Positions 2,431-58,964 of a stretch of DNA of 64,000 nucleotides are shown piece by piece. A model generated the notes under the pieces. It saw nothing but the letters and a program-made list of their open reading frames with translations, was not told where the DNA came from and made no database searches. The DNA lies in IMG/VR virus record IMGVR_UViG_3300032236_001613, positions 62,001 to 126,000 of that record; one strand, 5' to 3'. A program made the position numbers and the translations under genes. Position 1 is the stretch's first letter. Every line of letters begins with the position of its first letter.

Positions 2431-2458
2431 GTACATTATAGCAGGTTTTACCAGAATG

Positions 2459-3001: not shown

Positions 3002-3004
3002 GGT

Positions 3005-3373: not shown

Positions 3374-3376
3374 TGT

Positions 3377-3574
3377 TTACTCCTTTTCTTTAAACTCGGG
3401 CATATGCTGAGACCAATCATATGTACCTACTTCATGATCCTCAGTCGGTTCTGGCAGTTGGAGTTTCAAAGCTTTGATCTCATCTTTAAGAGCACGGTTC
3501 TTGGCACGCAGGCCTGCTACAGTTTTCTCCAGCTGCTCACTGTACTCTTCGTAACTAAATTTGGGTCGAGACAT
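3377..3574 (-). CDS. Small coiled-coil protein
   Basis: RBS; directly downstream of promoter 3606-3634. Confidence 0.75.
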   Translation of the reverse strand: MSRPKFSYEEYSEQLEKTVAGLRAKNRALKDEIKALKLQLPEPTEDHEVGTYDWSQHMPEFKEKE

Positions 3575-3636
3575 TTCTGTTGCTCCTTACTGTCTAAGTG
3601 CGTATATTATACTAAGGTTTTACCGAAAGGTCAAGT

Positions 3637-3906
3637 CTATTTTTCAGTTTTGATTGCCTTAGCCACCATAGCTTCAATTTCTTTAACCACAGCAGCCAGT
3701 ATTGAACGGTAATATAATGATAGATTGTGTGCTATAACCCACACGATAGCCAATGTCCCGTAGAAGATCTTAGGTGGTTCGTGCCATAGTAAGGCACCTA
3801 GTGAGGTCCATGCAGCAATAGCGATAGCGAGCCGCTGTAGCAGCTCGCTTCGGCTAATGTTAGTAGTTACTCGAACTTCACTCACCATCAAACCCGCTTC
3901 ATGCAA
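3637..3906 (-). CDS. Small membrane protein
   Basis: Two hydrophobic segments; true start may be downstream of the annotated one. Confidence 0.55.
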   Translation of the reverse strand: MHEAGLMVSEVRVTTNISRSELLQRLAIAIAAWTSLGALLWHEPPKIFYGTLAIVWVIAHNLSLYYRSILAAVVKEIEAMVAKAIKTEK

Positions 3907-4727
3907 GTAATTTCAGCGAAGTTCGTCCAACTGTCCGGAAAGGCTACCTTCAAGTCTGCAATCTTAATCACAGCACGACATGACAGCTCCAACATACGCT
4001 CGCTATTATCATGAATGAAGTCAAGAATTGCTTTCTTTTCTTCTTCTTCGAAGCTGTACTTCTGCAGCATACCTGATTCAGTAACGTGACGCAGCCAGAT
4101 CAGCTTTTCACGATCGGTATCCATCTGTAGGTCAATGTAGTGGCAACGCGACTCAATCGCCTTCAAGTGGTTACGGAGTTTCTTAGAGCGCACGAAATCA
4201 AACTTCAAGTTGGTAATGAAGATTGCGCCACCCAAGAACTCAAAGCGATCTGGAATACCTTCACGTCGTAGCAAGCGACTGTCCTTGTTCCATGAAATGA
4301 AACGACGTTCGCTACTGTCAAGAGCGCCTTTAAGAGTGTTCAAGCTCTCTTCTTCTTCAAGTACAGTATCACAGTCGTCAAAGCCGATCACGTTCTTTTC
4401 TTCGCGGAACTCAAAGAGTTTAGCATATAGACCAATGCTAGATGCTGTACCTTTGACAATCTCATAGCGTGGCTTGCGACCGGCCAGTAGATTAAACAGA
4501 TCATCCTTAGCCAGGATTTCGCCTACGCCGTGGCTCTTGCCTACGCCAGCAGGACCTGATACAATAAGAGCACGAACGTGGCCTTGCTTAACGGCGCGGG
4601 TTACGTCGTGGAATACCTTAAAACGATTTTGCAAGCGGGTAAGAATCTGTGCATCAGTTTCTTTAGCAACAGACTTAGCAACGTCGGCAATACGATCCTG
4701 ATCCAATTCAATGGTGCTTTTGGTCAT
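3888..4727 (-). CDS. Phage P-loop (AAA-type) ATPase
   Basis: Walker A GPAGVGKS, Walker B IGFDDCD, sensor-like IFITN, ESRC arginine-finger region. Confidence 0.85.
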   Translation of the reverse strand: MTKSTIELDQDRIADVAKSVAKETDAQILTRLQNRFKVFHDVTRAVKQGHVRALIVSGPAGVGKSHGVGEILAKDDLFNLLAGRKPRYEIVKGTASSIGLYAKLFEFREEKNVIGFDDCDTVLEEEESLNTLKGALDSSERRFISWNKDSRLLRREGIPDRFEFLGGAIFITNLKFDFVRSKKLRNHLKAIESRCHYIDLQMDTDREKLIWLRHVTESGMLQKYSFEEEEKKAILDFIHDNSERMLELSCRAVIKIADLKVAFPDSWTNFAEITCMKRV

Positions 4728-4800
4728 TTAAGGTCCTTAAAAAGTAGAATTAATTACGCATCAACAGGTATATTATACTGCAAAGACCCTAATGGGTCAA

Positions 4801-5082
4801 TTAAGACTTAGTATCTTTGAGTACTCGTTTAATCATCTTCTGAAGCATTTGGTTGTTCGACTCGGAATCTTCTAGTTCGGCAGTCAAACGGGCGACCTGA
4901 GCAGTCAAACGCTCAACTTCGATCTTTTGGCGCTCTAGATCGTTCTGTAACTGCTGCTGTTGGGTTCGCGCATTCTGGGCGTCTAGTTTATATGCGTCAC
5001 GGCTTTTGATAGCTAGGGCTGCTAGCTCCATAAGCGGAGTGTCTGCAGTAGGTACAGGGTTATTGGCGGGTTCTAGTTTCAT
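4801..5082 (-). CDS. Coiled-coil protein
   Basis: Heptad pattern; AAGGA RBS; upstream promoter. Confidence 0.7.
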   Translation of the reverse strand: MKLEPANNPVPTADTPLMELAALAIKSRDAYKLDAQNARTQQQQLQNDLERQKIEVERLTAQVARLTAELEDSESNNQMLQKMIKRVLKDTKS

Positions 5083-5158
5083 AGTATGGACATCCTTCTA
5101 GTGTAGTAATTATCCAGGTAGATAACTATACACTAGAAGTTTTGGATAGTCAACCAGA

Positions 5159-5365
5159 TTATTCTGCAAATTCTTGCTCTTGGTAGTAAGCCAAGAGTTC
5201 GCGTTGAATAGTAGGAATCATCTCACCATCGCTTTCAATAGTAAAGCGGATAGGTGCATGACGCCAACTCTGTGTACGCTGGAACTCAGCGAACAGTTTT
5301 CGATGTCGAGCATTAGTTACATCAAACAATTCGTAAGGACGCATATGCAGATTCAATCGGCTCAT
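5159..5365 (-). CDS. Hypothetical protein
   Basis: AAGGAG RBS, compact operon spacing. Confidence 0.7.
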   Translation of the reverse strand: MSRLNLHMRPYELFDVTNARHRKLFAEFQRTQSWRHAPIRFTIESDGEMIPTIQRELLAYYQEQEFAE

Positions 5366-5380
5366 GGTCGTTCTCCTTAG

Positions 5381-5662
5381 TTAGGCTGCAACGGATTCGG
5401 ATTTCTTCTGTGTCTTAGTGCGCCGGGCTAGGCCGTCTTCAAGAGCTGCACGGACCTCAGCACGCCCATCATCAAAGTCAATGCTGATCAAGTATTCGAT
5501 AGCAGCGATCTTAGTCATGGGTTCGGGCAATTCGATCATATCAATGCAGTCATGATCAGTTTTGGCCAAAACCTTAACGCGAGCTGCATCGGTAGCAAAC
5601 CTGGTTTTGAACTGGCCTTTCAAACGGCTAACGCCGGCGTGTGTAAAAAGTTTATCAGTCAT
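5381..5662 (-). CDS. Hypothetical protein
   Basis: GAGGAG RBS; promoter ~5691-5720. Confidence 0.75.
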   Translation of the reverse strand: MTDKLFTHAGVSRLKGQFKTRFATDAARVKVLAKTDHDCIDMIELPEPMTKIAAIEYLISIDFDDGRAEVRAALEDGLARRTKTQKKSESVAA

Positions 5663-5726
5663 TTTGTCAACTCCTCTGTCTGTGTGCGTGTATTATACGA
5701 AACACAGACAGAGTTGTCAACCATTT

Positions 5727-6011
5727 TTAGTTCAAGCGTGGTGGTTCAGGATCGTATTCATCTTCGGTAGCGTACTGGTCTTCTGGATCGTAAGGCATAG
5801 TAGTCTCCTCTGTATCAGTGTCGTTATCAGTGTCAATCTCTTCCTCGTAGAATTCTCTAGCGGAATCGAGTTCGTCCTCAAAGTCGTCATCGCAGTAGTG
5901 CATAATATCGGCCAAAAGATCTGCAGGGCAAGTCCAAGTGGTGCCGTCGTTGCTAGCCAGCAGATCACGGATACGCTGCACAGCCTGTTGGTGTAGGGTC
6001 AAAGTAGTCAT
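5727..6011 (-). CDS. Acidic hypothetical protein
   Basis: Start moved to ATG 6011 (AAGGAG RBS); D/E-rich tail. Confidence 0.7.
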   Translation of the reverse strand: MTTLTLHQQAVQRIRDLLASNDGTTWTCPADLLADIMHYCDDDFEDELDSAREFYEEEIDTDNDTDTEETTMPYDPEDQYATEDEYDPEPPRLN

Positions 6012-6067
6012 TGTCCGTGCTCCTTTTGTTAAGTGTATATTATACAATCAACTAGGTATTGAGTCAA

Positions 6068-6424
6068 CTATTCGTCATTGTCGCATATTTCGCAAGGTTC
6101 CCAAGGTAATGCTCCGTGTGTGCAAGGTTTAGGGTCAGATTTCTTGGGAAGTGGAAGGTTCTTTAAAGGAGTAGTGCTGAATTCAGCAGATCGAACTACT
6201 CTTTTTAGTTCGTTGTCCCGAACTCTTTTATGAATGGGCTTTTCTTTTGCTGGGGTATCTCTTTCTGGAGGTTTTGAGTTCCTCAGTGTTTGTATCAAAC
6301 TATCTGTGTGAGCTACAGCAGATTGTGCTATCTTTATAGGATCCAATTTTTCGTTTGCTATGTTAGCCAACATTCCTTGCATGGCCATAGCCGCGATTTG
6401 CTCTCGTTTAGTTAAGTGCTTCAT
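6068..6424 (-). CDS. Hypothetical protein
   Basis: LTKRE.IAAMAMQG.LA motif common in small phage proteins; C-terminal CxH..CxxC. Confidence 0.7.
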   Translation of the reverse strand: MKHLTKREQIAAMAMQGMLANIANEKLDPIKIAQSAVAHTDSLIQTLRNSKPPERDTPAKEKPIHKRVRDNELKRVVRSAEFSTTPLKNLPLPKKSDPKPCTHGALPWEPCEICDNDE

Positions 6425-6471
6425 CTCTATATACCTTTGATGATACAGTATACAGAGATTCTAACCTATTG

Positions 6472-6672
6472 TCAATCGGGTTTTTTGAGCCAAAACTCCG
6501 CATCGTGTGCTATGCATTCTAGTGTGCCTGCGCCCGGGTAGTGGCGTAGAATGTGCATAGCACGTTCGCGCAAGTGTCGAGGGACTCTGGGTGTGGCTTT
6601 TGGGTTTAAGAGTTCTACTAAGAAGCGTTCTGCTGCTAGTAGAGCGCGATATCGTTCATCGGGTAGGGTCAT
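6472..6672 (-). CDS. Small conserved phage protein (BPSL0761-like)
   Basis: MTLPDERYRAL...PRVPRHLRERA..ILRHYP pattern recalled from that family. Confidence 0.6.
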   Translation of the reverse strand: MTLPDERYRALLAAERFLVELLNPKATPRVPRHLRERAMHILRHYPGAGTLECIAHDAEFWLKKPD

Positions 6673-6675
6673 TTA

Positions 6676-7305
6676 TTAATCCTCTGTATCAAGTCCGGAT
6701 AATTCTCTCATTCGTCTTGTATTAAAAAATGCAATCATTTCACCTAATTTAGCAGGCAAAGATTCGGACAAGACAAATCTATAGTTTTTGAAAGATACTT
6801 CGTTTCCAAAATATTGATTCATTTCGTCTGCATTTTTAAATGTAACGCGACTCTGTCCAGGACTGTGTATATCATAGACAGAAACATAATGTCCTTGATT
6901 GAATAATCTTTTCCAAATAGCAAACCCTTCATCACTTAACTGGTCGTCGCTGATAATGCATACTGGATAGTGAGTATCTTTGAGTACAGCATTATACAAG
7001 TTACTAGCGTAAGGAGGATGCCCGCTGTAATTAGGATCTTTGCCTACTACGTTTACCAAAAGGTTTTGTGGTTTTTTGGAAAATTCTATAGCTAGAAATA
7101 TATGTGTTTCTGTACCATACCAGTAGTAAATTGTACTTTCTAATTCAATTTTGAACAAGTCTTTAGATAACTTTTTTGGGTGTATTCCAGAAGATAATAG
7201 TTCTTTCACGTTTTGAGAAATTATAGGGTACATATCGCCTATATTATTTCTTTTGGGCATCTCTGTCAACCATGACTGGTTGAAATCAGTTCTACTCGTA
7301 GTCAT
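6676..7305 (-). CDS. AT-rich hypothetical protein, possibly virion-associated
   Basis: 209-aa ORF, markedly AT-richer than neighbours; N-terminal ..WLTE. Confidence 0.75.
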   Translation of the reverse strand: MTTSRTDFNQSWLTEMPKRNNIGDMYPIISQNVKELLSSGIHPKKLSKDLFKIELESTIYYWYGTETHIFLAIEFSKKPQNLLVNVVGKDPNYSGHPPYASNLYNAVLKDTHYPVCIISDDQLSDEGFAIWKRLFNQGHYVSVYDIHSPGQSRVTFKNADEMNQYFGNEVSFKNYRFVLSESLPAKLGEMIAFFNTRRMRELSGLDTED

Positions 7306-7308
7306 TCT

Positions 7309-7491
7309 TCAGCCCAAATCCGTTTTATAGCGAATGTGTACAGCAAAATCATAGGCTGCTTCAGGAGTCAAGCCTTTGGCTACAGCCCACCCAAGAGTCA
7401 AACTAAACCAATCTTGTGAACTGTCTGTATCGATTTCTGATGCTCTATCAGAGCATTCGGTTTTGAACAGTTCGATCAATTGTTCGTTCAT
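7309..7491 (-). CDS. Hypothetical protein (MNE- start family)
   Basis: Stop/start overlap with neighbours. Confidence 0.7.
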   Translation of the reverse strand: MNEQLIELFKTECSDRASEIDTDSSQDWFSLTLGWAVAKGLTPEAAYDFAVHIRYKTDLG

Positions 7492-7697
7492 TATTCAACT
7501 CCGAAATGATGCTTCAAAATACTACCACGGCTAACAAATGGATGATCAGCATCCTTGTCCATAATATAAGCACATTCCTTGACAATCAACTGGGCGAAAT
7601 TTTTAATAAAAACTTCTTCCAAACTGTTGGCAAAATCAAATCCTGGCAGAGGTTTATATCCAGCCTGTTCAGCAAGTTCTCTAATTCGCTCGTTCAT
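7491..7697 (-). CDS. MNERI-family small protein
   Basis: MNERIRELAEQAG..FAQLIVKEC..KHHFGVE. Confidence 0.8.
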   Translation of the reverse strand: MNERIRELAEQAGYKPLPGFDFANSLEEVFIKNFAQLIVKECAYIMDKDADHPFVSRGSILKHHFGVE

Positions 7698-7975
7698 TCT
7701 TCAATTCCGAAATGTTTTAGGATCTCGTCTCGAAGTTCACCGTTGCGAAATTCGGTAGCAAAGTCGTCCACCAAATGCACATAAAGATACTGCATAGCCT
7801 GTTCGGATTTGGGCAGTTTCAGAAATTTCTTGATACGCCGCCGTTCTTCTTTACTATATTCCTTAAGGTGATCCTTATGCACATAAAAGCCATCTGGGTC
7901 GTAATAGTCAAATTCAAATTCCGTGGCAAGATTGTGACAGCGACTTTCCATGCTTTCAACAATATATTCGTTCAT
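7694..7975 (-). CDS. Small protein sharing MNE..HFG.E ends with its neighbours
   Basis: Starts MNEY, ends LKHFGIEE; ATGA overlaps. Confidence 0.75.
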   Translation of the reverse strand: MNEYIVESMESRCHNLATEFEFDYYDPDGFYVHKDHLKEYSKEERRRIKKFLKLPKSEQAMQYLYVHLVDDFATEFRNGELRDEILKHFGIEE

Positions 7976-8178
7976 TCTTTAACTCCAAAATAACGCTTCA
8001 AACGAACAGGATACTCACTTGCGGGAAAACGATGGTCGACAAAATCCTGTATAGTCTTAGCACATTCCATAACAATCAACTCTGCGAACTTTTCAATAGC
8101 CTCTTGATCCCAAGCATCAGGAGTACCGTCGCAATACAAACCTGCTTCCTCAGCGAGAGTGTGAATACGTTCGTTCAT
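7972..8178 (-). CDS. MNERI-family small protein
   Basis: MNERIHTLAEEAG..FAELIVMEC..RYFGVKE. Confidence 0.8.
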   Translation of the reverse strand: MNERIHTLAEEAGLYCDGTPDAWDQEAIEKFAELIVMECAKTIQDFVDHRFPASEYPVRLKRYFGVKE

Positions 8179-8390
8179 TATTCAAAGACCTTAACAACTT
8201 CTTTATGCACCCGCTTGTCTGTCTGTAGGTATTCAACCCAGTTTTCAGCATCTGCGAGGTCGTGAAATTTACCATCTCGCTTAGTAGGATGCCAGATGTT
8301 AATCCAAAACAAGCCTAAACACTTGCTCTGTATCGCATACTGTGGGCGTCCGTAGTAGGCGCCGCTATGCTTAACAATACGGTATTTCAT
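8178..8390 (-). CDS. Hypothetical protein
   Basis: MKYRIV..Y.IQ.K.L.FW pattern; coupled overlaps. Confidence 0.7.
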   Translation of the reverse strand: MKYRIVKHSGAYYGRPQYAIQSKCLGLFWINIWHPTKRDGKFHDLADAENWVEYLQTDKRVHKEVVKVFE

Positions 8391-8632
8391 GCTTCACCTT
8401 CTACTAATGACAAGTTGTATTCACGAATTATAGGCTTTTCATTATTGATAGAGCAAGGATCTTCCATCACGATAAGACGTGTGTCGTCGATAACATAGAT
8501 AACAGTTGGATCTTCTAGCCCTTCAAGAAAAACCCGATGCATCATAGCGTGTTTACTAACGCCCCACCAAGTAGGGTAATCGATCTTTTCCCAATCCAAC
8601 GAAAAAAGAAACAGGATAGGTGGTGCTTTCAT
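8387..8632 (-). CDS. Hypothetical protein
   Basis: ATGA overlaps on both sides. Confidence 0.65.
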   Translation of the reverse strand: MKAPPILFLFSLDWEKIDYPTWWGVSKHAMMHRVFLEGLEDPTVIYVIDDTRLIVMEDPCSINNEKPIIREYNLSLVEGEA

Positions 8633-8976
8633 TCTTCAAACCTTTTCCAAAATTGCTGGTATGCCTCGAACTCTTTAGAAAATGCAGCATCCTTAGCCTT
8701 TTTTTCTTTTGCCAATCGTGCCTTATTAGCCTTGTTTTCTTTCGCTACCCGTGCCTTATATTCGCGGTCATTTTCTTCGCGTCGTTCATAGACGTTGATT
8801 GTATACTGACCAGGAACCTCTTCTGTTTCTTCGTGACGGAAGAAAAGTTCTCGGTTCTTATGAGTCTCCATAAGATCCTGAAGATTCTGGATAACCTGCA
8901 TAGGAGTTTTATTATGAAAGGTATGATACACGTATGCGTTACGAACCCAGCTTTCAATAATTTTACGGTCACTCAC
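8629..8976 (-). CDS. Hypothetical protein
   Basis: First gene after promoter 9006-9033; GTG start with AGGAG RBS. Confidence 0.7.
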   Translation of the reverse strand: MSDRKIIESWVRNAYVYHTFHNKTPMQVIQNLQDLMETHKNRELFFRHEETEEVPGQYTINVYERREENDREYKARVAKENKANKARLAKEKKAKDAAFSKEFEAYQQFWKRFEE

Positions 8977-9029
8977 GGGTCTACTCCTTCTGTTTACATG
9001 CTAACAGTATAGCAGGTTTTACCAAAAAG

Positions 9030-9395
9030 TCAACCTGTAGGATTGTTGGATAGGCAATGCGGGCAGGGCATTACGTCTGTATTCGGCACCAAAATAATCC
9101 CAGCTCCGCCACATTCTGGGCAGGGATCTGAACCCCGCGCACGGATGGCTTTGAAAATTGCCATTTCGGCATCCCACACGGCAACCTCTTCAGCGTTTCC
9201 TTGGTTGCCGCAATCACAACGCTCGCAACTGCACGGACGCTTGTATTTAGGTTCGGCTAACTTCTCACACGCCTCGCGCTCATGGGCAGCGACAAGGTTG
9301 GCAAAGAGTTCAAAAGAGTCCCGTCCTTTAGACGAAAACATATAAAGATCAAACCCTGACTCTTCTACCAGTCTTAGGATGTCATCGCGGGTCAT
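9030..9395 (-). CDS. MTRDDI-type protein with Cys-rich zinc-binding motifs
   Basis: FANLVAAHEREAC motif; CSCERCDC, CPECGGAG, CPHC. Confidence 0.75.
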   Translation of the reverse strand: MTRDDILRLVEESGFDLYMFSSKGRDSFELFANLVAAHEREACEKLAEPKYKRPCSCERCDCGNQGNAEEVAVWDAEMAIFKAIRARGSDPCPECGGAGIILVPNTDVMPCPHCLSNNPTG

Positions 9396-9610
9396 CCGAA
9401 TGATCTCCTTGCATCATGTTCGTTGTCAAACATCTTGCAGCCCCAGTAAGTGAGAGCCTGTGCGTTGAAATAGCCAGGCTCACCCTTAGCCTTGTTCCAT
9501 GCTGCACAGGCTTCTGCAAAACTCTCTGCCTCGTACAGTCCACAAAATTCTGCACCGGAAGAATTACCCGTTGCAGCGTAACCTTCCATCCAGACTTCAT
9601 ATTGTTTCAT
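9392..9610 (-). CDS. Hypothetical protein
   Basis: YEVWMEGYAATG..YWGC pattern; overlap coupling. Confidence 0.7.
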   Translation of the reverse strand: MKQYEVWMEGYAATGNSSGAEFCGLYEAESFAEACAAWNKAKGEPGYFNAQALTYWGCKMFDNEHDARRSFG

Positions 9611-9622
9611 TGGTATCTACTT

Positions 9623-9796
9623 TTAAACGTAGCCCAACCACTGAGCTCCCCAACCTAGTGCACCGATTGCACACAATACGCTACCTAGGCCCAACAAAAT
9701 TCTAGCCCAGATGGGCAATATCTTGAATGCAATAGCTTCATAGCCCAAAGACACAAATAAGAACAAATAACAAATAGCTACAATTAACGGTTTCAT
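9623..9796 (-). CDS. Small membrane protein (57 aa)
   Basis: Manual translation MKPLIVAICYLFLFVSLGYEAIAFKILPIWARILLGLGSVLCAIGALGWGAQWLGYV; AGGAG RBS. Confidence 0.7.
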   Translation of the reverse strand: MKPLIVAICYLFLFVSLGYEAIAFKILPIWARILLGLGSVLCAIGALGWGAQWLGYV

Positions 9797-9839
9797 CTTT
9801 CTGCTCCTTTCAATGTAGAAGTATTATAGCAGATCGAGA

Positions 9840-10145
9840 TTAAGAGAACAACCTCTTATACCAGGGCTGTTCATCATTGACAACTTGTGGTTGTGTATTA
9901 AGAGTGGCGGCGTGCAACTCTCTATTTTGATAGCGCAACCCTTGATTCTCACGAGTGATGTCTAACAAATCATCTCGGCAAGATGCTAGGAGAGTTTCAA
10001 GCTCTTGGTTAAGAGCCTTCAAACGTTCGATAATAGTGCGTTGGCTAACGAACATGGCTTCGTAGTCAGCTAAACGCTGCTCTGCAGTAGGCTGTGTCTT
10101 TTCCAGCTCTTCTTTTTTACGCTGTTCGAATGTAGGTGCTGCCAT
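9840..10145 (-). CDS. Coiled-coil protein
   Basis: Heptads; C-terminus PWYKRLFS; AGGAG RBS. Confidence 0.75.
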   Translation of the reverse strand: MAAPTFEQRKKEELEKTQPTAEQRLADYEAMFVSQRTIIERLKALNQELETLLASCRDDLLDITRENQGLRYQNRELHAATLNTQPQVVNDEQPWYKRLFS

Positions 10146-10156
10146 TTCATGCTCCT

Positions 10157-10187
10157 AAAAAAAATGGGCAGTTTAATGACCTGCCCA
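10157..10187 (-). terminator. Rho-independent terminator
   Basis: TGGGCAG/CTGCCCA stem followed by an 8-T run on the minus strand. Confidence 0.8.
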
Positions 10188-10197
10188 GGTCGGTTAA

Positions 10198-10398
10198 TCA
10201 TCCGGCTACAGCATTGTTCCGGACAATCGACTCGGCTTCGTTACCATAAAGCCCATTAGCAGCCTTGATGGAGATCTGCTCACGCAAACCACCCGACTCA
10301 GTGCCGTTGCCCGAAAGCATACGAGCCACTGCATGGATGCTGTGGAAGCGACGGATAACGCCCGACGGATGGGTAACAAAAATTCGACGATTAGTCAT
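10198..10398 (-). CDS. Small putative DNA-binding protein; paralog of 1..132
   Basis: RRFHSIHAVARMLSGNGTESGGLR; AAGGAG RBS. Confidence 0.75.
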   Translation of the reverse strand: MTNRRIFVTHPSGVIRRFHSIHAVARMLSGNGTESGGLREQISIKAANGLYGNEAESIVRNNAVAG

Positions 10399-10477
10399 TT
10401 CAAACTCCTTGTGTATCTAAAAGGTTTAATCTAACTCAACAGAACTATTATAGCAAAACTCTCAATCTAAGTCAACC

Positions 10478-10759
10478 TCAAACCTTAATAACGCCATGGT
10501 TATAACGAGTCTCCAGTACATCGTAAAACTCGTCAACAGCAGCAAAAAACCGGCAATGACGCGGGCTAGCCAAACGTCCTGCAGCCTTAGCACGCCCATA
10601 GGCCCGATTGAAGTTATCGTGCTCGCTACAAATAGCAACCGCATAATCGATACCTTCGGGCTTTTCAATAAAGGCCACAGTGGCTCCACCACGGCTTTCA
10701 ATCTTTCCGTCCAGATCACGGTTACGATAGTGAATGTACTTGATCTTAGGTGTATTCAT
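10478..10759 (-). CDS. Conserved phage protein
   Basis: GGATVA..YAVAICSEHDNFNRAYGRAKA.GRL pattern; RBS and promoter. Confidence 0.75.
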   Translation of the reverse strand: MNTPKIKYIHYRNRDLDGKIESRGGATVAFIEKPEGIDYAVAICSEHDNFNRAYGRAKAAGRLASPRHCRFFAAVDEFYDVLETRYNHGVIKV

Positions 10760-10815
10760 CTGTCCATCTCCTTTCTGTTTGTGTCTAAGTATTATACTAT
10801 GGTTTTACCAAAAGG

Positions 10816-11355
10816 TCAAGTAATTTTTCTCGAAACAATAAAAGTATCATCTGCACAGTTATATAGCAATGATTCCTTAATTTGTTTCGATACGTTAAAA
10901 GTTTTCGGCATCTCGAACTCATCACTTCCTTGATTATTTTTAGCTCGTGCACCCGTATAACGAGTTTGAGATATTATATTCTTTAGATCATATCCTTTAG
11001 ACTTTGCATATTCTTTAATTTGTCGCTTTAACCACCTAATACCGGCGGTTCCTATGTCTACCCCATTATATTGAGTTCCTAAACTAGTATGAACAATTTT
11101 ATTGTTACTGGGATGGTCAACTGGTGCTATATTTCCAATGTCAATGGATCCATTTTTAGAAAGTGAGAATGACGCAATTACCAATGGTCTATTGCTAGAC
11201 TTTTCAATCACTTTGGCATAATAGTGCCCTGGTATATCCTTAACTTGTTCGAAAGTAATAGATAGCTCTTGTTCTGGATTCTTATACGATTCTAGTATCA
11301 ATATTGAATTAATGTTGATAAAAAAGAATTTGCTTTCTATTTCATGTAGTCTCAT
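10816..11355 (-). CDS. AT-rich late-type protein with capsid-targeting-like N-terminus
   Basis: MRLHEIE start; TAAATA box at 11374-11379; AT-rich. Confidence 0.7.
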   Translation of the reverse strand: MRLHEIESKFFFININSILILESYKNPEQELSITFEQVKDIPGHYYAKVIEKSSNRPLVIASFSLSKNGSIDIGNIAPVDHPSNNKIVHTSLGTQYNGVDIGTAGIRWLKRQIKEYAKSKGYDLKNIISQTRYTGARAKNNQGSDEFEMPKTFNVSKQIKESLLYNCADDTFIVSRKIT

Positions 11356-11384
11356 TCCTACGACCTTTTGCTATATTTAACTCC

Positions 11385-12029
11385 TTAGTGTGCATAGTAG
11401 CTAGTGTTCTGTACGCTGTCGTCCCAGCAGGCGCGGCAGTTACCGCACTCATTGTCTTGAAAGCGGCTAGGGCAATCGTAGCCGTGTGCAGCACCATTCT
11501 TATGCACGGTTGAGGTATGCTCAAAGCCCTTAGGCGGCTCTGCGTCCATTTGCTGGGCACTCATACGGATTACAAGATTGCGTGGACGGCTGCGAAGTCG
11601 AAGGAACTCGCGCACCATACCAAACTCACGGGTAGGCAACCAATGCTCAACCCAAGGAGTCTGCTCTGCTACTTCGGCAATCATCTGCAAGTGATCTACA
11701 CTCTGCAGGTCGCCGCTATCGTGCCAACGGAAGTGTGTTTCACCTTTCAGTAGGCGCACCATAGCAGCAATCCAAGTGTCGCGAGTAACAGTATTGAGCA
11801 GAGCTTCTGCCAAACGAGCATGACGACGGTTGTGTGCTGCCTTAGTGTTGGGTAGTGAATACATTCCGCGCATAGCGTAACACTGGTGGCAGGTGCTGCC
11901 TTCTACTTGGCGCAGGATGCTACCAGTTTGGCAACGGGTAGCACTAAGCCCAAAGCTCTTGCCCGGCATTTTGCTAGGATTGCTGAGTCCACCAACAAAC
12001 TCTGCTGCCTCTGCTTTGGTCCTAAACAT
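11385..12029 (-). CDS. Gp88-like phage protein (Cys-rich)
   Basis: LSNPSKMPG.SF.L.A..C..G..L, C..CYA, FRWHDSGDL, HWLPTRE, C..C..CW; start moved to ATG 12029. Confidence 0.75.
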   Translation of the reverse strand: MFRTKAEAAEFVGGLSNPSKMPGKSFGLSATRCQTGSILRQVEGSTCHQCYAMRGMYSLPNTKAAHNRRHARLAEALLNTVTRDTWIAAMVRLLKGETHFRWHDSGDLQSVDHLQMIAEVAEQTPWVEHWLPTREFGMVREFLRLRSRPRNLVIRMSAQQMDAEPPKGFEHTSTVHKNGAAHGYDCPSRFQDNECGNCRACWDDSVQNTSYYAH

Positions 12030-12083
12030 AGCCAACTCCTTACTGTTACTGTAGGAATAGTATACTATGGTTTTACCAAAAGG

Positions 12084-12527
12084 TCAAGCCAATTCTTTCT
12101 TCTTGGCTCGGACTCGGGCTGTTCCCTTCTTAGTATGACGCACCATGCGAGCGTAACGATGCTGCCCCATCAAGATTTGGATACGACCTTCAAACCCGTC
12201 CTTAATAGGAACGCTCCCAGTTTCAATTTTGAAGTTGTTCTTGTCAAACCACTGAAGCCACTCGTAAAGTTCGGCTTCGGCTTCCTCACCGCGGCTCAAT
12301 ACTGCCACGCAGGGATGCTTATGATAGGCGTTCTCCGGACACCAAACGACGCCATTCTTATCTGCTCGTTTGTAGTCCTCGTCGTACCATGCATAGTCTG
12401 GATAATTACCGTCGACTACAATGCCCACGCAATGCCGCCCGATGCCTACTTCGCCTTCGAGATCCAGTTGACAGTTATTCTTAGCAGCCCAAACCGCCAT
12501 CCAAGTAATCTTTTCATCGCGTGTCAT
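12084..12527 (-). CDS. Hypothetical protein
   Basis: Own promoter and AGGAG RBS. Confidence 0.75.
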   Translation of the reverse strand: MTRDEKITWMAVWAAKNNCQLDLEGEVGIGRHCVGIVVDGNYPDYAWYDEDYKRADKNGVVWCPENAYHKHPCVAVLSRGEEAEAELYEWLQWFDKNNFKIETGSVPIKDGFEGRIQILMGQHRYARMVRHTKKGTARVRAKKKELA

Positions 12528-12581
12528 TGTATTACTCCTTGCTCTAACTATGAGTATATTATAACAGGTTTTACCAAATGG

Positions 12582-12923
12582 TCAAACACAATCTGAGACA
12601 AATTCTGTGTCAGGTGCAACCAGCGTTTCTACAAACCAAGTACCGCCTGTGCCCTGAGTATGCTCTTGTGCGTAGTCTTCTGCAGACTCTACGCTAGGAA
12701 ACGGGCCCGCAAAGTTAAATCCCTTGACAGGATCTCCATGTACTACAACAAGATCCACATTATCATCTTGTCCATCAACATTGGGCGTCCGCATCATGAC
12801 TACAAACCATGCAGCGGCTGTGCAGTACTCCCCGCCATAGTCGTAGGCTGCTTCTTCTTGATCAAAAGGCCCGATAAACTCGAAGCCGCTAGAAAGGTCA
12901 CCAAATAATATAACAAACTGCAT
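12582..12923 (-). CDS. Protein with internal duplication
   Basis: Two copies of V...GD...GF.F.GPF...E.A.DY..E...  WFV. Confidence 0.8.
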   Translation of the reverse strand: MQFVILFGDLSSGFEFIGPFDQEEAAYDYGGEYCTAAAWFVVMMRTPNVDGQDDNVDLVVVHGDPVKGFNFAGPFPSVESAEDYAQEHTQGTGGTWFVETLVAPDTEFVSDCV

Positions 12924-12987
12924 AGACAGTCTCCTTTTGCTATGAGTATATTATAACAGGTTTTACCAAAAAGTCAAGACCTGTGTT

Positions 12988-13353
12988 CTAAAGAGTCAAA
13001 CCTTCGACACCATTTTTCCGAGGTTGCCAGATACACTGGCTCCACTGAACTAGTTCTCGGTCATTCCTGTCATCGTAGGGTTCTAACCATGCCACAGGCA
13101 CCGCGTAAGACATAGGCCTGCCACTATGAGTGGAAGTTCCCCGATCAATCTGCCTACCGTCGGCCAGCACAGCAGTGAGGTCGTGCACGTCACAGGTGAT
13201 GCGTTGCCCGCCTGTTGTCTCTACAGTGGCGTGCCTGGCAGGTGCTCGCACCACAGCGTATTGCAGTTCATCGGGCGGTGGCGTGCCCTGCTGGTCAATC
13301 TGAATCACACGGACCCGTTGTCCAACTTTAAATCCCGTACTCATATTAAACAT
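12988..13353 (-). CDS. Hypothetical protein (FKVGQRV / WSQCIWQP)
   Basis: Own promoter and RBS; motifs shared with 2459..3001. Confidence 0.7.
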   Translation of the reverse strand: MFNMSTGFKVGQRVRVIQIDQQGTPPPDELQYAVVRAPARHATVETTGGQRITCDVHDLTAVLADGRQIDRGTSTHSGRPMSYAVPVAWLEPYDDRNDRELVQWSQCIWQPRKNGVEGLTL

Positions 13354-13405
13354 TTTCTCCTTGCTAGTGTCTGTGTATTATAGCAGGTTTTACCAAGAAG
13401 TCAAG

Positions 13406-13640
13406 TGCTTCTCTCTGCTGGCGGTGTTTGTCATCTCACCACAAACAATTATGTGGTATCCGCATCCCAACACAGAGAGACTTTCGTGTGCCAACGCCCG
13501 TTAGGTTAGACGGCAGTATTGCTACTGGAGACCATTGACAGTCATTCTCGCGAATGATATGTTGTTCTCAAACCACCCGTGGTTGTCACACCACTTCATC
13601 ATGCGGGTCACATTAGTGGCTGACTAAGCCACGTGGTCTT
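13406..13640 (-). ncRNA. Candidate multi-hairpin structured ncRNA
   Basis: ORF-free; GNRA-capped stems TCATTC-GCGA-GAATGA and CAGTA-GCAA-TACTG; 8-bp TCTCTCTG/CAGAGAGA enclosing a 7-bp stem. Confidence 0.6.
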
Positions 13641-13643
13641 TAA

Positions 13644-13928
13644 TTAACTAAAAATGTCAGCCAAAATCTGGTCAATTTCATGCTGACGTGCACGTTCGCC
13701 ATGAACGCGATCCATGAACTCTGACATCATGCCCGGACGATTGTGGACATAGTCCAGCTGGCCGTATGCCGAAATGTCAAAGTAACGGAAGGATGGTGCA
13801 CCAGGATAGTACTTAATCCACTGACCGCGCTGCAGGACCAAACGACCGTCCTGGATAGCACGCCGAGTGGCCGGATCCGAAAGAACCGGAGTAGGAAGAA
13901 ACTGACGACCCTTACGATTGATAACCAT
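13644..13928 (-). CDS. Hypothetical protein
   Basis: Promoter 13978-14006 and AAGGAG RBS. Confidence 0.7.
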   Translation of the reverse strand: MVINRKGRQFLPTPVLSDPATRRAIQDGRLVLQRGQWIKYYPGAPSFRYFDISAYGQLDYVHNRPGMMSEFMDRVHGERARQHEIDQILADIFS

Positions 13929-14002
13929 ATTAATTGCTCCTTACAAAAAAGTGTTTAAACTCTAACTCAACAGAACTATTATACTAAACTTTTACCAAAA
14001 GG

Positions 14003-14164
14003 TCAATAAAGACTTGAAAGATTTTCACGTTGCCAAACCCAGAGATCCTGTATCACATGAAACGCAGGTCCAACAGGGCCAATAGCGACGCCAGTGCGGC
14101 TATCCACTTCAAAAGTCTGCCAACCGCCTACAACACTACGGCAAGTGTATTCTTTGACAAACAT
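14003..14164 (-). CDS. Small hypothetical protein (53 aa)
   Basis: Manual translation MFVKEYTCRSVVGGWQTFEVDSRTG...; AAGGAG RBS. Confidence 0.65.
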   Translation of the reverse strand: MFVKEYTCRSVVGGWQTFEVDSRTGVAIGPVGPAFHVIQDLWVWQRENLSSLY

Positions 14165-14173
14165 GTCTGCTCC

Positions 14174-14326
14174 TTAGAGTTTGATCAGCACATCAGGATA
14201 GGCAGTAGCAAATGTTCGTGTTCGTTCACCACGCGGATCATAGTAATAATCCACTCGTTGACAATAGCGTTTGGCCAGCCACTTCACCACGAACACAGGC
14301 AGTATCACAGTCCATTTTGCTAACAT
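14174..14326 (-). CDS. Small hypothetical protein (50 aa)
   Basis: Manual translation MLAKWTVILPVFVVKWLAKRYC...; AAGGAG RBS, promoter 14353-14380. Confidence 0.65.
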   Translation of the reverse strand: MLAKWTVILPVFVVKWLAKRYCQRVDYYYDPRGERTRTFATAYPDVLIKL

Positions 14327-14376
14327 TGTTTGCTCCTTACTAGTATCTATATAGTATAGCAGGTTTTACCAAAAGG

Positions 14377-14595
14377 TCAACCAACCAAACCCTCATCCAT
14401 CATCTCCAAGAGTTTGATGGTGTATTCTCGCTCGTGACTGTAAGTCCTTGACTCGTTAGCCCATTCCTCACCATAGACAGCGAGGAACTCGTTGTAGATC
14501 TCTCGAAGAGAGATTTGAGGAAAACGGAATGCAACCTCATGGTACAGTTGGCCTTGGTTGACCATCTCGCGCATCTCGATGTTGATCTCTTTCAT
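14377..14595 (-). CDS. Hypothetical protein
   Basis: Own promoter 14620-14647. Confidence 0.7.
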   Translation of the reverse strand: MKEINIEMREMVNQGQLYHEVAFRFPQISLREIYNEFLAVYGEEWANESRTYSHEREYTIKLLEMMDEGLVG

Positions 14596-14649
14596 CTTAC
14601 CCTCGTTTGCTATGAATATATTATAGCAGGTTTTACCAAAAGGTCAAAC

Positions 14650-14844
14650 TTAGAATTGGCGAACGCAGAGTGACTGAATATGCGGAGCAGGCGCATAAAA
14701 ACTATTTTGTTCCTGCTGATGCAGCCATCCAGTACCTGCAGCTAGACAGGCCTCTTTGCTTTCAAAAGGCCCAATCTGGGTTATAGCTGAGCCGCCGCGA
14801 TGGTCACTCGCCGCAATAGTAAGAATCAATAACCAACCTGCCAT
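14650..14844 (-). CDS. Small exported/membrane protein
   Basis: WLLIL..., F.SKEAC..A pattern; GGAG RBS. Confidence 0.7.
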   Translation of the reverse strand: MAGWLLILTIAASDHRGGSAITQIGPFESKEACLAAGTGWLHQQEQNSFYAPAPHIQSLCVRQF

Positions 14845-14845
14845 A

Positions 14846-15046
14846 TTATTTCTCCTTCTTCAATTTAGGAAAGTGATAGGCTAAATTTTCCCAGAGACCT
14901 AGAACTATTGCTGCGGGTATAAACAGCACCATTAGACGGCTCCTGTCTAGGCCTAGCCCTAGTAATGGCATAGTCGTTAGTATCACAATACCTGCTATGA
15001 TCAGAGCCACAACTACGCTCAGTAAAATGACCAATAGAGTCACCAT
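14846..15046 (-). CDS. Small two-TM membrane protein
   Basis: Hydrophobic; 1-nt spacing with neighbours. Confidence 0.7.
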   Translation of the reverse strand: MVTLLVILLSVVVALIIAGIVILTTMPLLGLGLDRSRLMVLFIPAAIVLGLWENLAYHFPKLKKEK

Positions 15047-15047
15047 A

Positions 15048-15251
15048 TTACTTGTCCTTCTTGAAAAGATCCACTACAGACATCAAAATGCTCTTCAGTA
15101 AGAACACTACAAAGCCTACAACCGCGTATGGCAGACAGATGATAAAGCCTATAACAGGCACAGCCATCACAGCAGCTCCTAATGAGAACACGGCAGCGAA
15201 TGCTACTATGCACCATAAAATCAACAGAGTTGAGTAACTAACGGTAATCAT
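15048..15251 (-). CDS. Small two-TM membrane protein
   Basis: Hydrophobic; 1-nt spacing. Confidence 0.7.
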   Translation of the reverse strand: MITVSYSTLLILWCIVAFAAVFSLGAAVMAVPVIGFIICLPYAVVGFVVFLLKSILMSVVDLFKKDK

Positions 15252-15252
15252 A

Positions 15253-15471
15253 TCACTTGACCTTTTTTGGAAAAATCTTTTTCCAAAGCATAATGGGTGA
15301 TGTGATCAGTAACACGCCCAGCATCAATATACCACCCGGAATTAGAATAATCCACAGTATGGGCCTCTGCTTGGTGCCGAAATGTGCGCCAAACTTCATA
15401 GAAACCATGCCGGCTATTCCCAATGCCAAAAACAATACAACCAGCAAGGTTATGAGACTGATAGTAATCAT
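15253..15471 (-). CDS. Small two-TM membrane protein
   Basis: Hydrophobic; AAGGAG RBS. Confidence 0.7.
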   Translation of the reverse strand: MITISLITLLVVLFLALGIAGMVSMKFGAHFGTKQRPILWIILIPGGILMLGVLLITSPIMLWKKIFPKKVK

Positions 15472-15480
15472 AACATCTCC

Positions 15481-15774
15481 TTAAAACGGAATATCGTCGT
15501 CAAGCTGACGAGTAGATGGCCGAGGAGGACCTACGAACTCACTCTTAGCAACAGCCCGATCAACCCAGTATTGTACCTCCTCTTCGGTCATATAACAGGT
15601 TTCTTCAGGATGTGGCTGCGGCTTACCACGATAGTGCGGGTTCTCAATCCACACGTCGTAATCAGTAAGAATCCATTGACTATCCTTGTAACGATCATAA
15701 TCACCTACATTGTAGGCATATTCACGCATGGCTTCAGCTGGAGTGGCTACGCGATCTTCTTCATCATAAAACAT
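15481..15774 (-). CDS. Protein ending in SSB-tail-like DDDIPF
   Basis: C-terminus LDDDIPF; own promoter and RBS. Confidence 0.8.
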   Translation of the reverse strand: MFYDEEDRVATPAEAMREYAYNVGDYDRYKDSQWILTDYDVWIENPHYRGKPQPHPEETCYMTEEEVQYWVDRAVAKSEFVGPPRPSTRQLDDDIPF

Positions 15775-15828
15775 TGAAGACTCCTTACTGTTACTGTAGG
15801 AATAGTATACTACGGTTTTACCAAAAGG

Positions 15829-16095
15829 TCAAGATTTTTTGTATAGAGAGTGAAGGGCTTCGTGCTGCTCCAAAGCTTTCAACTGCTTCTTCACCTGAGT
15901 GAGATAGAGGTAGCGGCGATTGACTTCGGATCGGGCCAACTCACCATCGCAGGTCAAGTTCTCAGGGCTAAGGTCAGACTCTAGATGACCTGCCAGATGC
16001 CGACGGTGTTGCGGATCGTTGAGGTCCAGATCGGCCTCCTTGAAGAAGCGATTGATCTGATTGATGTGATCTAGATATTCAGTGAGTTCTTCCAT
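15829..16095 (-). CDS. Conserved phage protein
   Basis: LSPENLTCDGEL motif; own promoter and RBS. Confidence 0.75.
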   Translation of the reverse strand: MEELTEYLDHINQINRFFKEADLDLNDPQHRRHLAGHLESDLSPENLTCDGELARSEVNRRYLYLTQVKKQLKALEQHEALHSLYKKS

Positions 16096-16152
16096 AGGTT
16101 GCTCCTTGCTAGTGAGTCAGTATTATACTAAGGTTTTACCAAAAGGTCAACA

Positions 16153-16359
16153 TCAATTCACAAGATTTACACGCTCTAAACGGTAAAAGAAATCTTGCTT
16201 AGGGTCAACAATTCCAAACTCCACAAAGTATTCCGAACCTGTAAGTTCGTCATGGCAATGGAACCCGTCATCTTGTGTGTAGTCAATACGAAACACATCA
16301 CCATTCTGTATAAAGAATACTGAGTTCTGTGCAATGTCATGCAATTCGTTATGGTCCAT
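16153..16359 (-). CDS. Hypothetical protein
   Basis: Stop/start overlap. Confidence 0.7.
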   Translation of the reverse strand: MDHNELHDIAQNSVFFIQNGDVFRIDYTQDDGFHCHDELTGSEYFVEFGIVDPKQDFFYRLERVNLVN

Positions 16360-16691
16360 TATGCCTTCTCCTCAGTTTGAGCTTTGAGCTTGGCTAACTT
16401 TTTTTCGAGATTACTGATTTCTTTCAAGCGGGCCTTTTCCTTTCGGATAGCCTCTTTCTTCTTTTCTTCCTCTTCTCGAATTTTACGTTCAGCATCCTGC
16501 TTCTGATGTTCATTCCACCAGTCCAGATGCTGTTTCTTAGTAACTCCGCACTCTGTCCAATCAATGCGATCCACAATAGTAGGATCTGCTCGCATAGCAG
16601 CACAAACTACGGCTTCGAACTGTTTGACACGTTTCTCAAGGTTTCGTGAATTACGTTCTCGATCATAACTATCATCTACATAGCAAGGCAT
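16359..16691 (-). CDS. Hypothetical protein with charged coiled coil
   Basis: MPC start, WW.EH..QD motif; AAGGAG RBS. Confidence 0.75.
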   Translation of the reverse strand: MPCYVDDSYDRERNSRNLEKRVKQFEAVVCAAMRADPTIVDRIDWTECGVTKKQHLDWWNEHQKQDAERKIREEEEKKKEAIRKEKARLKEISNLEKKLAKLKAQTEEKA

Positions 16692-16703
16692 ATCATATTC
16701 TCC

Positions 16704-17057
16704 TTAGTCTGAACTGTCGTAGGCGTTGATCTGACCGCAATGGATACACTTATACTGGTCATAGCCGCGGCCTAGATTCTGTAAGAACTTCCACTCATGC
16801 CCAGAACACTTAGCCGCAGTCTCCTTAGAGACATAACCGTGACCACCACAGTGATCACAGATTTTACGGAAATGACTGTAACGATGACGATTCTCTGGAG
16901 TATCAGGCTTGCCATGCAGGTTGTAGCTGTTGATAGAAAGATTCCACCCACCATGACCACGGCAGCGAGGACACTCTACAGTATAATTAAGCCAAGGCTC
17001 CTTGCGTGGATGATCCAAGAATGCATCTGGATGATCTGGCGTAAGAAAGTCTGACAT
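16704..17057 (-). CDS. Zinc-finger protein (DnaJ-type CxxCxGxG)
   Basis: CPRCRGHG, CDHCGGHG, CIHCG. Confidence 0.8.
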   Translation of the reverse strand: MSDFLTPDHPDAFLDHPRKEPWLNYTVECPRCRGHGGWNLSINSYNLHGKPDTPENRHRYSHFRKICDHCGGHGYVSKETAAKCSGHEWKFLQNLGRGYDQYKCIHCGQINAYDSSD

Positions 17058-17110
17058 ATGTTACTCCTTGCTCTAACTATGAAACTATTATAGCAGGTTT
17101 TACCAAAAGG

Positions 17111-17257
17111 TCAACCGTTATCTGGAACTTCCTTGAAGCCAAATGCCGTAAGGTCATCAAGGTTAATGACTTCCCGGAGATAGTTCAGTAGCATCAGCTC
17201 GGCTGCATCGAGATCTTCTGCATCAAACTCTGTTTCGAAATTGATTTTGAATTTCAT
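17111..17257 (-). CDS. Small acidic protein (48 aa)
   Basis: Manual translation MKFKINFETEFDAEDLDAAELMLLNYLREVINLDDL...; stop lies in the next -35 box. Confidence 0.55.
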   Translation of the reverse strand: MKFKINFETEFDAEDLDAAELMLLNYLREVINLDDLTAFGFKEVPDNG

Positions 17258-17462
17258 AGGCTTCCTCACGGCTCATTTCATTATTGATACGATTGAAAAT
17301 GCAGTAGTCAGACACTCCTGCATCATACCCGGTCTTATAAGCATGACCACATTTGGCGTCGTGCCCGTTAACGGCATCGTAATACTGCTGATCTACACGA
17401 CCTTCTTCACGCCCGTCGAAGTAACCACGAGCATAGGCATAATAGGTGCTATCGTAAGACAT
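17223..17462 (-). CDS. Hypothetical protein
   Basis: YARGYFDGR..YKTGYDAG repeat-like motif; AAGGAG RBS. Confidence 0.7.
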   Translation of the reverse strand: MSYDSTYYAYARGYFDGREEGRVDQQYYDAVNGHDAKCGHAYKTGYDAGVSDYCIFNRINNEMSREEAYEIQNQFRNRV

Positions 17463-17480
17463 TGTGTTGCTCCTTTAATC

Positions 17481-17690
17481 TTATACCAATTTCATATAGT
17501 TAAATTCGGTCTTATTGCAGCGGCTGCAGATTCTGGTTTGATATATCACAAAACTGTAGACTCGACCCTTTCTATGCCAGGTTTCATTAAGAGACATGTT
17601 TGTCTCTTCATGATCCTCTCCATTGAGAAACTCACGAACGTAGTATTCGTTTAGATTAGCCCACTGACTCCACTTGTGTATAATGCACAT
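17481..17690 (-). CDS. Hypothetical protein
   Basis: MCIIHKWSQW..RICSRCNK pattern. Confidence 0.65.
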   Translation of the reverse strand: MCIIHKWSQWANLNEYYVREFLNGEDHEETNMSLNETWHRKGRVYSFVIYQTRICSRCNKTEFNYMKLV

Positions 17691-17747
17691 ATTACTTCAG
17701 CTCCTTGCTCTAACTGTGAATACATTATAGCAGGTTTTACCAAAAAG

Positions 17748-17990
17748 TCAACCTTCTTCGTCTTCTTCCTCGTCGTCTTCGGGCCAATCGTCGTCCTCAT
17801 CGTCTTCCCATTCTCCGTTACAATCTTCTCCCCAGGGTTCGTCGATGACGAGATCTAGGTTCTCGTCAAAAACTTCTTGGTTGACAATGGATACGTTGAC
17901 ATGGTTGTGTTCATAGTTTGCCAAAGCTTCAACATCAGTTTCTGCTTCAACTTCATACTGATGGGTGATTCGAACGTAGAATTTGGGCAT
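17748..17990 (-). CDS. Acidic hypothetical protein
   Basis: Own promoter and RBS; poly-D/E tail. Confidence 0.75.
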   Translation of the reverse strand: MPKFYVRITHQYEVEAETDVEALANYEHNHVNVSIVNQEVFDENLDLVIDEPWGEDCNGEWEDDEDDDWPEDDEEEDEEG

Positions 17991-18521: not shown

Positions 18522-18899
18522 TTACTTACTAGATGTCTGGACGAAGTGAGCTTGAGACCTATAGCCTAGTTCGCGTAGGCTAGTATTAATCAACTGCATG
18601 ACCGTCTTAGAAACGGGCGTGTCTGTTCTTGGAGGTTGAATACTCCAGGGCATTCCTCGCTCTTTGGGTTTCAAAAATGGATATCGATACTTCTCACCAT
18701 TAGGGTAACGAAACTCTTGCCCAGTTTTTTTGAGCAAGGTATTGTAAAGCCAATAAAGCATGTTGCTACGCTGACGTGCACGATCGTAGATATCTTTAGA
18801 AGATTGATCAATCTGTTCGATACCCCGACGCAAGGCACTGAGAGCTAATGCTTGAAGCTCGGGGTCTGGGTTACTTTCTAACAGTTCTTGTATCTGCAT
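18522..18899 (-). CDS. Late protein with capsid-targeting-like N-terminus
   Basis: MQIQELLE; TAAATA 4 nt upstream of ATG. Confidence 0.75.
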   Translation of the reverse strand: MQIQELLESNPDPELQALALSALRRGIEQIDQSSKDIYDRARQRSNMLYWLYNTLLKKTGQEFRYPNGEKYRYPFLKPKERGMPWSIQPPRTDTPVSKTVMQLINTSLRELGYRSQAHFVQTSSK

Positions 18900-18919
18900 A
18901 CTGTATTTATTTGTAGAAA

Positions 18920-19225
18920 GTTGCAGCGTCTTCGCTGGGTACGAAACGCTGCTGCCTCTTGATTTTTTGGAGATAAATCCTTCCAGCCCCGCTGAATCGG
19001 GCTCAAGTTATCCTACTTGTGCGACAAACAATAGAAACTTTCGTTTCTACCCGGCAAAGCCCTCATCATAACGACAATGACTCTACCCGCGGTTATACCG
19101 TTTCATTAGTCCCCTAGGAGCATAGCTAGCATTCAGACCGCTAGACGACACTAAGGGTTTCGCTTTCGGTTCAGGCATATGTAGTTATCAACATCACAGA
19201 CCGCTACAGCGGGGTTTTTGGTTTA
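18920..19225 (-). ncRNA. Candidate ~300-nt structured ncRNA downstream of tRNA-Leu
   Basis: ORF-free; long-range CCCCGCTG/CAGCGGGG, TAGAAAC-GAAA-GTTTCTA hairpin, GCAGCGT/ACGCTGC stem. Confidence 0.55.
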
Positions 19226-19230
19226 ATAGT

Positions 19231-19519
19231 TGGTGCCCTGAGCCGGACTCGAACCGGCACGCCAGTGGCGTCAGATTTTCTTACTACTACAGTTTTCACT
19301 GCCAGCTTGCGCTGTTTGTAGTCTGGACTATACCTTGACCTTAGCTATTGCTTTAGGTCCTTGCCGTCTAGTCTCTACACCTTCCTATTTCTAGGCTTGG
19401 CTCGGTATTAGCAGTTAAGCCTTCACCGAATTTGACAAGTTACATCTTAAAAGTTTCCTAATAAGAGCTCAAATCTTTTCTCTAAGTCTGATGCGTCTAC
19501 CTTGTTCCGCCATCAGGGC
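19231..19519 (-). tRNA. tRNA-Leu(UAA) split by a group I intron (exons 19484-19519 and 19231-19279)
   Basis: Acceptor GCCCTGA/TCAGGGC, anticodon stem TCAGA/TCTGA, loop CT-T^AA-AA after splicing, long variable arm, CCA. Confidence 0.92.
19280..19483 (-). mobile_element. Group I self-splicing intron (IC3-type, 204 nt, no ORF)
   Basis: P AAATTCGGTGAA, Q AATACCGAGC, R GTAGAGACTAGACGG, S AAGGTATAGTCC; follows a U and ends in G; inserted after U34. Confidence 0.9.
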
Positions 19520-22130: not shown

Positions 22131-22208
22131 TGGTGGGACTACTAGGGTACGATCCTAGACTCTCGCCGATTATGAGTCGGGGGTTTTAACCAATTAAACT
22201 ATAGTCCC
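22131..22208 (-). tRNA. tRNA with CAU anticodon (elongator Met or Ile2)
   Basis: Acceptor GGGACTA/TAGTCCC, loop CTCATAA, CCA; atypical T-loop ATCGTAC; paired G1-C72 argues against initiator. Confidence 0.85.
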
Positions 22209-51524: not shown

Positions 51525-51579
51525 GGTGAGTGCCATTGTTATAGTTAGAAGATATAGGTAATGAGGAGTTAAATACGGC

Positions 51580-58917: not shown

Positions 58918-58964
58918 TTTCTAAATTCCTTTCTGCTATTATATGCGTATATTAAATACGGCAT

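Follow-up and report, generated by a model that had tools for sequence, protein, structure and literature searches.

The 64,000-nt window analyzed here (bases 62001-126000 of the 328,068-bp IMG/VR virus record IMGVR_UViG_3300032236_001613) encodes, at positions 13634-13405 of its minus strand, a genuine and compactly folded non-coding RNA of about 230 nt belonging to a family that is not in Rfam. This family has been seen only in uncultured freshwater phages, often inside or beside their tRNA gene clusters. Its function is not shown by any of our data, and the reading that we favor, i.e. a stable, stand-alone and trans-acting RNA, is proposed with a probability of about 0.6. The initial annotation, which inferred an undescribed structured non-coding RNA from the sequence alone, is supported, including the strand and the extent that it assigned to the element.

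The record has a G+C content of 37%, its DNA is found in freshwater-lake metagenome runs and it corresponds to a jumbo phage. Positions 2400-17800 of the window form a tight array of small minus-strand genes, bracketed by tRNA-Lys(UUU) (240-314) and tRNA-Met(CAU) (22131-22208), both on the minus strand. This array is punctuated (2435-17751) by nine almost identical sigma-70 promoters, TTGACnnnnnGGTAAAACCTGyTATAAT, that are practically confined to this part of the genome, the rest of the 328-kb genome having only one weak match. In related freshwater contigs, joints jump from one promoter copy to another (12576>12950, 12977>14352, 13385>14352 and 14381>14617), as if early gene cassettes were exchanged by recombination at the promoter repeats. 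Few proteins of the early region have any family match, one of them being a 216-aa protein (11385-12035, minus strand) that matches Pfam GP88 (E 1e-27). Elsewhere in the window, three very large ORFs of 1807, 2445 and 1361 aa stand in a row (46101-63050, plus strand) downstream of a tail-fibre-like 1059-aa protein (33057-36236). The RNA lies in the largest gap of the 9-18 kb stretch of the array. It starts about 10 nt after the stop of a 94-aa ORF (13644-13928, minus strand) that has no family match, and ends 1-2 nt before the -35 box TTGACT (13404-13399) of the early-type promoter (13404-13377) of the next gene, a 121-aa ORF (12988-13353).

Taken alone, the sequence is not beyond chance. Its minimum free energy is -74 kcal/mol with a z-score of -1.78, 9 of 200 shuffles fold as well, the plus strand folds at least as well and the G+C content is ordinary for the neighborhood. 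The significance comes from the comparative data. When contigs of four freshwater DNA runs were aligned on the region, depth jumped about ten-fold over 13462-13609, meaning that this piece is shared with other, more abundant entities, and the variants showed paired changes in three hairpins. Four exact-pattern scans of IMG/VR, built on the unvarying stretches, found only three other contigs, one of them a 326,658-bp relative. Scans of metagenomes gave 19 contigs, of which 18 are genuine; the remaining one is a chance hit, as judged by eye from the alignment and by its rejection by a covariance model built from the family. After removal of duplicates, 15 distinct sequences (the window copy and 14 further homologs, 226-251 nt in length) from about 10 lineages were aligned. 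The metagenome search demanded TGGTTTGAGAAC and AATGGTCTCC exactly; the invariance of these two blocks is therefore partly built in and more divergent members were missed.

RNAalifold gives 53 pairs in 11 helices for this alignment. Among all cells, 99.0% are standard pairs, and 16 of the 53 pairs show compensatory double changes (52 cells). None of 500 shuffles reached these values, and sliding the 3' partners by 1-3 columns decreased pairing to 31-53% and the number of double-change pairs to 0-3. Furthermore, the 46 G-U cells give 99.6% pairing in the minus-strand sense against 93.3% in the opposite sense, in agreement with the direction of all the surrounding genes and promoters. The covariance model matches the window at 13394-13640 with 270.8 bits. 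The 5' end of the RNA lies near the conserved ACG that precedes the first hairpin and its 3' end at ..GAAGCA(C).

Almost all the elements listed in the initial annotation are present on the minus strand and are supported by the homologs. The 5' hairpin P0 (13632-13627/13621-13616), whose loop keeps G-U at 13624-13623, was misaligned by MAFFT, but six different stem sequences occur among homologs and all of them fold; a compensatory change (13618/13630) was also found in related contigs. The 5-bp hairpin P2 (13594-13579), with an invariant GUGACA loop, has double changes in three of its five pairs. The upper hairpin of the P3 domain (13557-13552/13547-13542) is capped by a loop that varies as GCGA, GCAA, GUAA and GUGA, and the 5-bp hairpin P4 (13527-13523/13518-13514) by a loop that varies as GCAA, GCGA and GAAA. 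Hence, both loops change sequence but never leave the GNRA class. This makes the suggestion that they point to tertiary docking plausible, although no receptor was identified. The long helix P7 (13480-13468/13420-13410, 11 bp) has four pairs with double changes. It encloses P8 (13463-13460/13424-13421), which has one, and the variable P9 domain (hairpin 13457-13452/13443-13438), which comes in two unrelated forms and several lengths. One related contig, aligned to 13357-13998, carries a 71-nt replacement of the P9 domain (13417-13473) and about 590 extra bases between the 94-aa gene, which keeps a copy of the P0 hairpin, and the RNA, the 14 bases 13610-13623 being present on both sides.

By contrast, the third GNRA loop of the initial annotation, a GAAA loop (13484-13481), is not confirmed: it is a junction that follows a 3-bp hairpin and varies to GACA and GAUA. 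Four elements had been missed. P1 (13613-13601) is a 5-bp hairpin with an invariant ACC loop, three pairs with double changes and a U-G wobble kept in 12 of 15 sequences; variants of it were also seen in the freshwater contigs. The others are the lower P3 helix (13569-13560/13540-13528), separated from the upper hairpin by an internal loop, the 4-bp hairpin P5 (13513-13498), whose 8-nt loop CNAACCNA includes an invariant AACC, and the 3-bp hairpin P6 (13496-13485), followed by the junction AAAG. P4, P5, P6 and the lower P3 helix never vary and are therefore predicted, covariation neither supporting nor contradicting them. A closing helix (13577-13574/13407-13404), 91.7% paired with no double change, is tentative. 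Besides the invariant loop sequences already mentioned, the stretches ACGGGUGGUUUGAGAAC and GUCAAUGGUCUCC do not vary. Several invariant stretches are complementary (ACCC of loop 1 with GGGU, AACC of loop 5 with GGUU, GUCA of the P0 loop with UGAC of loop 2) and might form tertiary contacts, but their invariance means that covariation cannot support them.

The element does not encode a protein. Every sense frame carries 1-9 stops in every homolog, the longest frames differ in strand and position between homologs, variable columns split 12/11/11 across codon positions and indels of 1-2 nt occur. The only candidate in the window, the 27-aa frame MMKWCDNHGWFENNISFARMTVNGLQ, has no RBS and is broken by a stop in relatives.

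None of the 4227 covariance models of Rfam 15 matches the element. Nothing was found there at the gathering threshold, only two chance-level hits, both on the plus strand, were obtained at E<=10 over 13200-13800, and six homologous loci searched at E<=5 gave only tRNAs and noise. ARAGORN detects only the two tRNAs mentioned above in the window and nothing at the element in 15 loci. No RNase P model matches, and the resemblance of GAAAGUC to the conserved region CR-I is not conserved, since it varies to GACAGUC and GAUAGUC. The group I intron model (RF00028) does not match this region even at E<=10, although group I introns share GNRA tetraloops and phage location with the element and a genuine one (64.3 bits) was detected 6 kb away, at 19308-19493 on the minus strand. 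That intron has no obvious interrupted host gene, but a 161-codon stop-to-stop frame (18522-19007, minus strand) lies beside it and might be an intron-associated ORF. The RNA described here has no exons, lies between a stop codon and a promoter and lacks the P3-P9 core arrangement. Searches of 50,697 GenBank phage records with the element and its flanks, or with 7.9 kb of the early region, gave no DNA match, and searches with flanking proteins in GenBank phages and IMG/VR gave no useful relatives. An exact-pattern scan of one genome from each of 185,579 prokaryote species gave a single hit, in a Lewinellaceae MAG, that the covariance model rejects. No description of this RNA was found in three literature searches, although overlap of part of it with one of the roughly 8,500 short motifs (29-151 nt) catalogued from IMG/VR (PMC10690425) could not be excluded.

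The covariance model finds one copy in this genome, one in the 326-kb relative at the syntenic place (about 73 kb against 75 kb from the contig start, same strand) and one in a 29.6-kb contig. The element always has the same orientation as the surrounding genes and is far better conserved than they are. Its core is 81-87% identical between lineages, whereas few flanking ORFs (0-8 per locus outside the window's own lineage) have any homolog in this genome, at 22-74% amino-acid identity, and none of the six ORFs flanking the copy in the syntenic relative has a hit. All-against-all BLAST of flanking ORFs shows that no protein family is shared by more than three loci and that none keeps a fixed position. 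PHROGs and Pfam searches gave nothing telling for the neighbors. A small WYL_2 (Sm-like SH3 barrel) protein lies directly upstream of the RNA in two lineages and 1.1 kb downstream in a third (L010:1076-1438, L025:1886-2131 and L014:6061-6327, L numbers designating the loci that carry homologs), but is absent near the window copy.

Several loci suggest that the RNA has its own transcription unit. In L015 and L021, a TTGACT-17-TATAAT promoter (11/12 match) ends 9 nt before P0 and a U6 run follows the 3' end. In the 326-kb relative (L004/L025), an early-class promoter (TTGACAgggtttGGTAAAA...) lies about 100 nt upstream and a U7 run follows, and L011 and L018 also have U-tracts. However, the window copy has no U-tract and no convincing promoter of its own, the best candidate (TTGACC-17-TTTAGT, 13675-13647) being weak. 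Here, the RNA is most likely read through from the early-type promoter TTGACC-17-TATAAT (14006-13978) together with the 94-aa gene, no terminator-like site being found between this promoter and the RNA on the minus strand, and it could be merely a 3' UTR. Evidence for expression is weak: one lake metatranscriptome holds a low-depth 157-nt contig of a relative covering 13489-13584, but the same library holds a contig spanning a promoter copy, so that read-through transcription and DNA carry-over cannot be told apart.

Furthermore, in seven loci (six lineages), the RNA lies within about 1.1 kb of tRNA genes on the same strand. For instance, it is located between tRNA-Ala and tRNA-Tyr inside a 14-tRNA cluster in L011, and 112 nt after tRNA-Asn and 248 nt before tRNA-Ala in L012. 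It lies 46 nt after tRNA-Lys in L015 and L021, 36 nt before tRNA-Glu in L009, about 570 nt after a run of six tRNAs in L005 and about 800 nt after tRNA-Leu in L025. For an element present once per genome, we estimate, without a computed statistic, that this is far more than chance placement would give. However, this link is positional only and is absent in several lineages, including that of the window, where the nearest tRNAs are 8.5 and 13 kb away.

Taken together, the ornate fold, the class-conserved GNRA loops, the long invariant junction stretches and the lack of any fixed neighboring gene point to a compact three-dimensional fold with a trans-acting role. That the element is a real structured RNA is almost certain, although only about 10 independent lineages are available, and that it is stand-alone and trans-acting is likely. 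We infer that it is made early in infection by the host sigma-70 RNA polymerase, by read-through in this phage and from its own promoter in relatives, where the 3' end would be set by a closing helix plus a U-tract, and that it then acts as a stable RNA-only or RNA-protein particle rather than as a cis regulator of one gene. Because it travels with tRNA genes, its most likely field of action is tRNA or translation-related host takeover, but this functional link remains tentative.

Other readings are less likely. The RNA could be a cis-acting module of early transcripts, working as an antitermination, stabilizing or processing platform on the polycistronic early or tRNA transcripts in which it is embedded. 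Indeed, the window copy directly follows the 94-aa ORF without a good promoter, the element is always co-oriented with flanking genes and it lies in promoter-rich early arrays and tRNA clusters, both of which need processing. Moreover, in L002, L007, L010 and L012, an RBS and ATG follow within 14-35 nt. This is however unlikely given the complete small transcription unit of L015 and L021, the unrelated downstream genes and the promoter that separates the RNA from the next gene in four loci (the window, L008, L023 and L004); in addition, antiterminator RNAs such as HK022 put and EAR are probably much smaller and simpler. A riboswitch or another ligand-sensing leader would fit the size, the multi-stem junctions with invariant nucleotides, the copies located directly before an RBS and the possible alternative pairing of GGUGGU (13577-13572) with ACCGCC (13425-13420), which competes with P8. 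Nevertheless, no gene family is conserved downstream, a promoter or a U-tract separates the RNA from the next gene in at least seven lineages and no Rfam riboswitch model matches, making this reading very improbable.

A catalytic RNA, for example one processing early or tRNA transcripts, would account for the many invariant nucleotides outside the helices, the two GNRA loops and the possible pseudoknots involving loops 1 and 5, this degree of ornateness being typical of ribozymes, as argued for ROOL (PMC5737381). This is also very unlikely, since no Rfam ribozyme family matches, including group I, RNase P and the twister, hatchet and pistol classes, there is no exon context and nothing in the data points to a cleavage site. 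Finally, the gap in an otherwise tightly packed array, the frequent recombination suggested by cassette exchange at nearby promoter repeats and the modest single-sequence z-score could indicate a decayed gene or a DNA-level element such as an origin, a recombination site or a protein-binding site. This is close to refuted by the compensatory changes, the strand-specific G-U pairs, the preserved GNRA class, the stops in all frames without codon periodicity and the conservation of the core across phages whose genes have diverged beyond recognition.

The closest known systems are GOLLD and ROOL, large ornate phage and prophage RNAs that are often encoded beside tRNA genes or islands and have a complex conserved fold, no partner protein gene and no known function (PMC5737381; bioRxiv 10.1101/2024.12.08.627333). 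They assemble into RNA-only cages possibly connected with tRNAs or ribosomes (bioRxiv 10.1101/2024.12.08.627333). The RNA described here shares their tRNA context but is about 230 nt, against about 580 to over 800 nt, and neither Rfam model matches it. The raiA motif, a complex-folded RNA of about 200 nt and of unknown function, has a similar size, multi-stem junctions, many conserved nucleotides and a stand-alone gene (PMC5737381), but is found in Firmicutes and Actinobacteria chromosomes, not in phages, and does not match the element. A more speculative and rather unlikely possibility is that the RNA represents a third, much smaller class of tRNA-island-associated phage RNA with a biochemical activity of its own. 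It would be, for example, an RNA-only assembly, a tRNA-binding or tRNA-mimicking particle that protects or manipulates the tRNA pool against host tRNA-targeting defences, or a new ribozyme, and would be expressed among the first transcripts of a jumbo phage.

Complex-folded bacterial and phage RNAs with many invariant nucleotides are rare and have repeatedly turned out to be ribozymes, riboswitches or unusual assemblies. The RNA described here is small enough for direct biochemistry and structure work, and its secondary structure is already well constrained. A compact third example sharing the tRNA-island context of GOLLD and ROOL could make it easier to test what phage RNAs located next to tRNA clusters do. 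It also indicates that the early region of an uncultured jumbo phage carries a non-coding gene, which gene callers would report as an empty gap.
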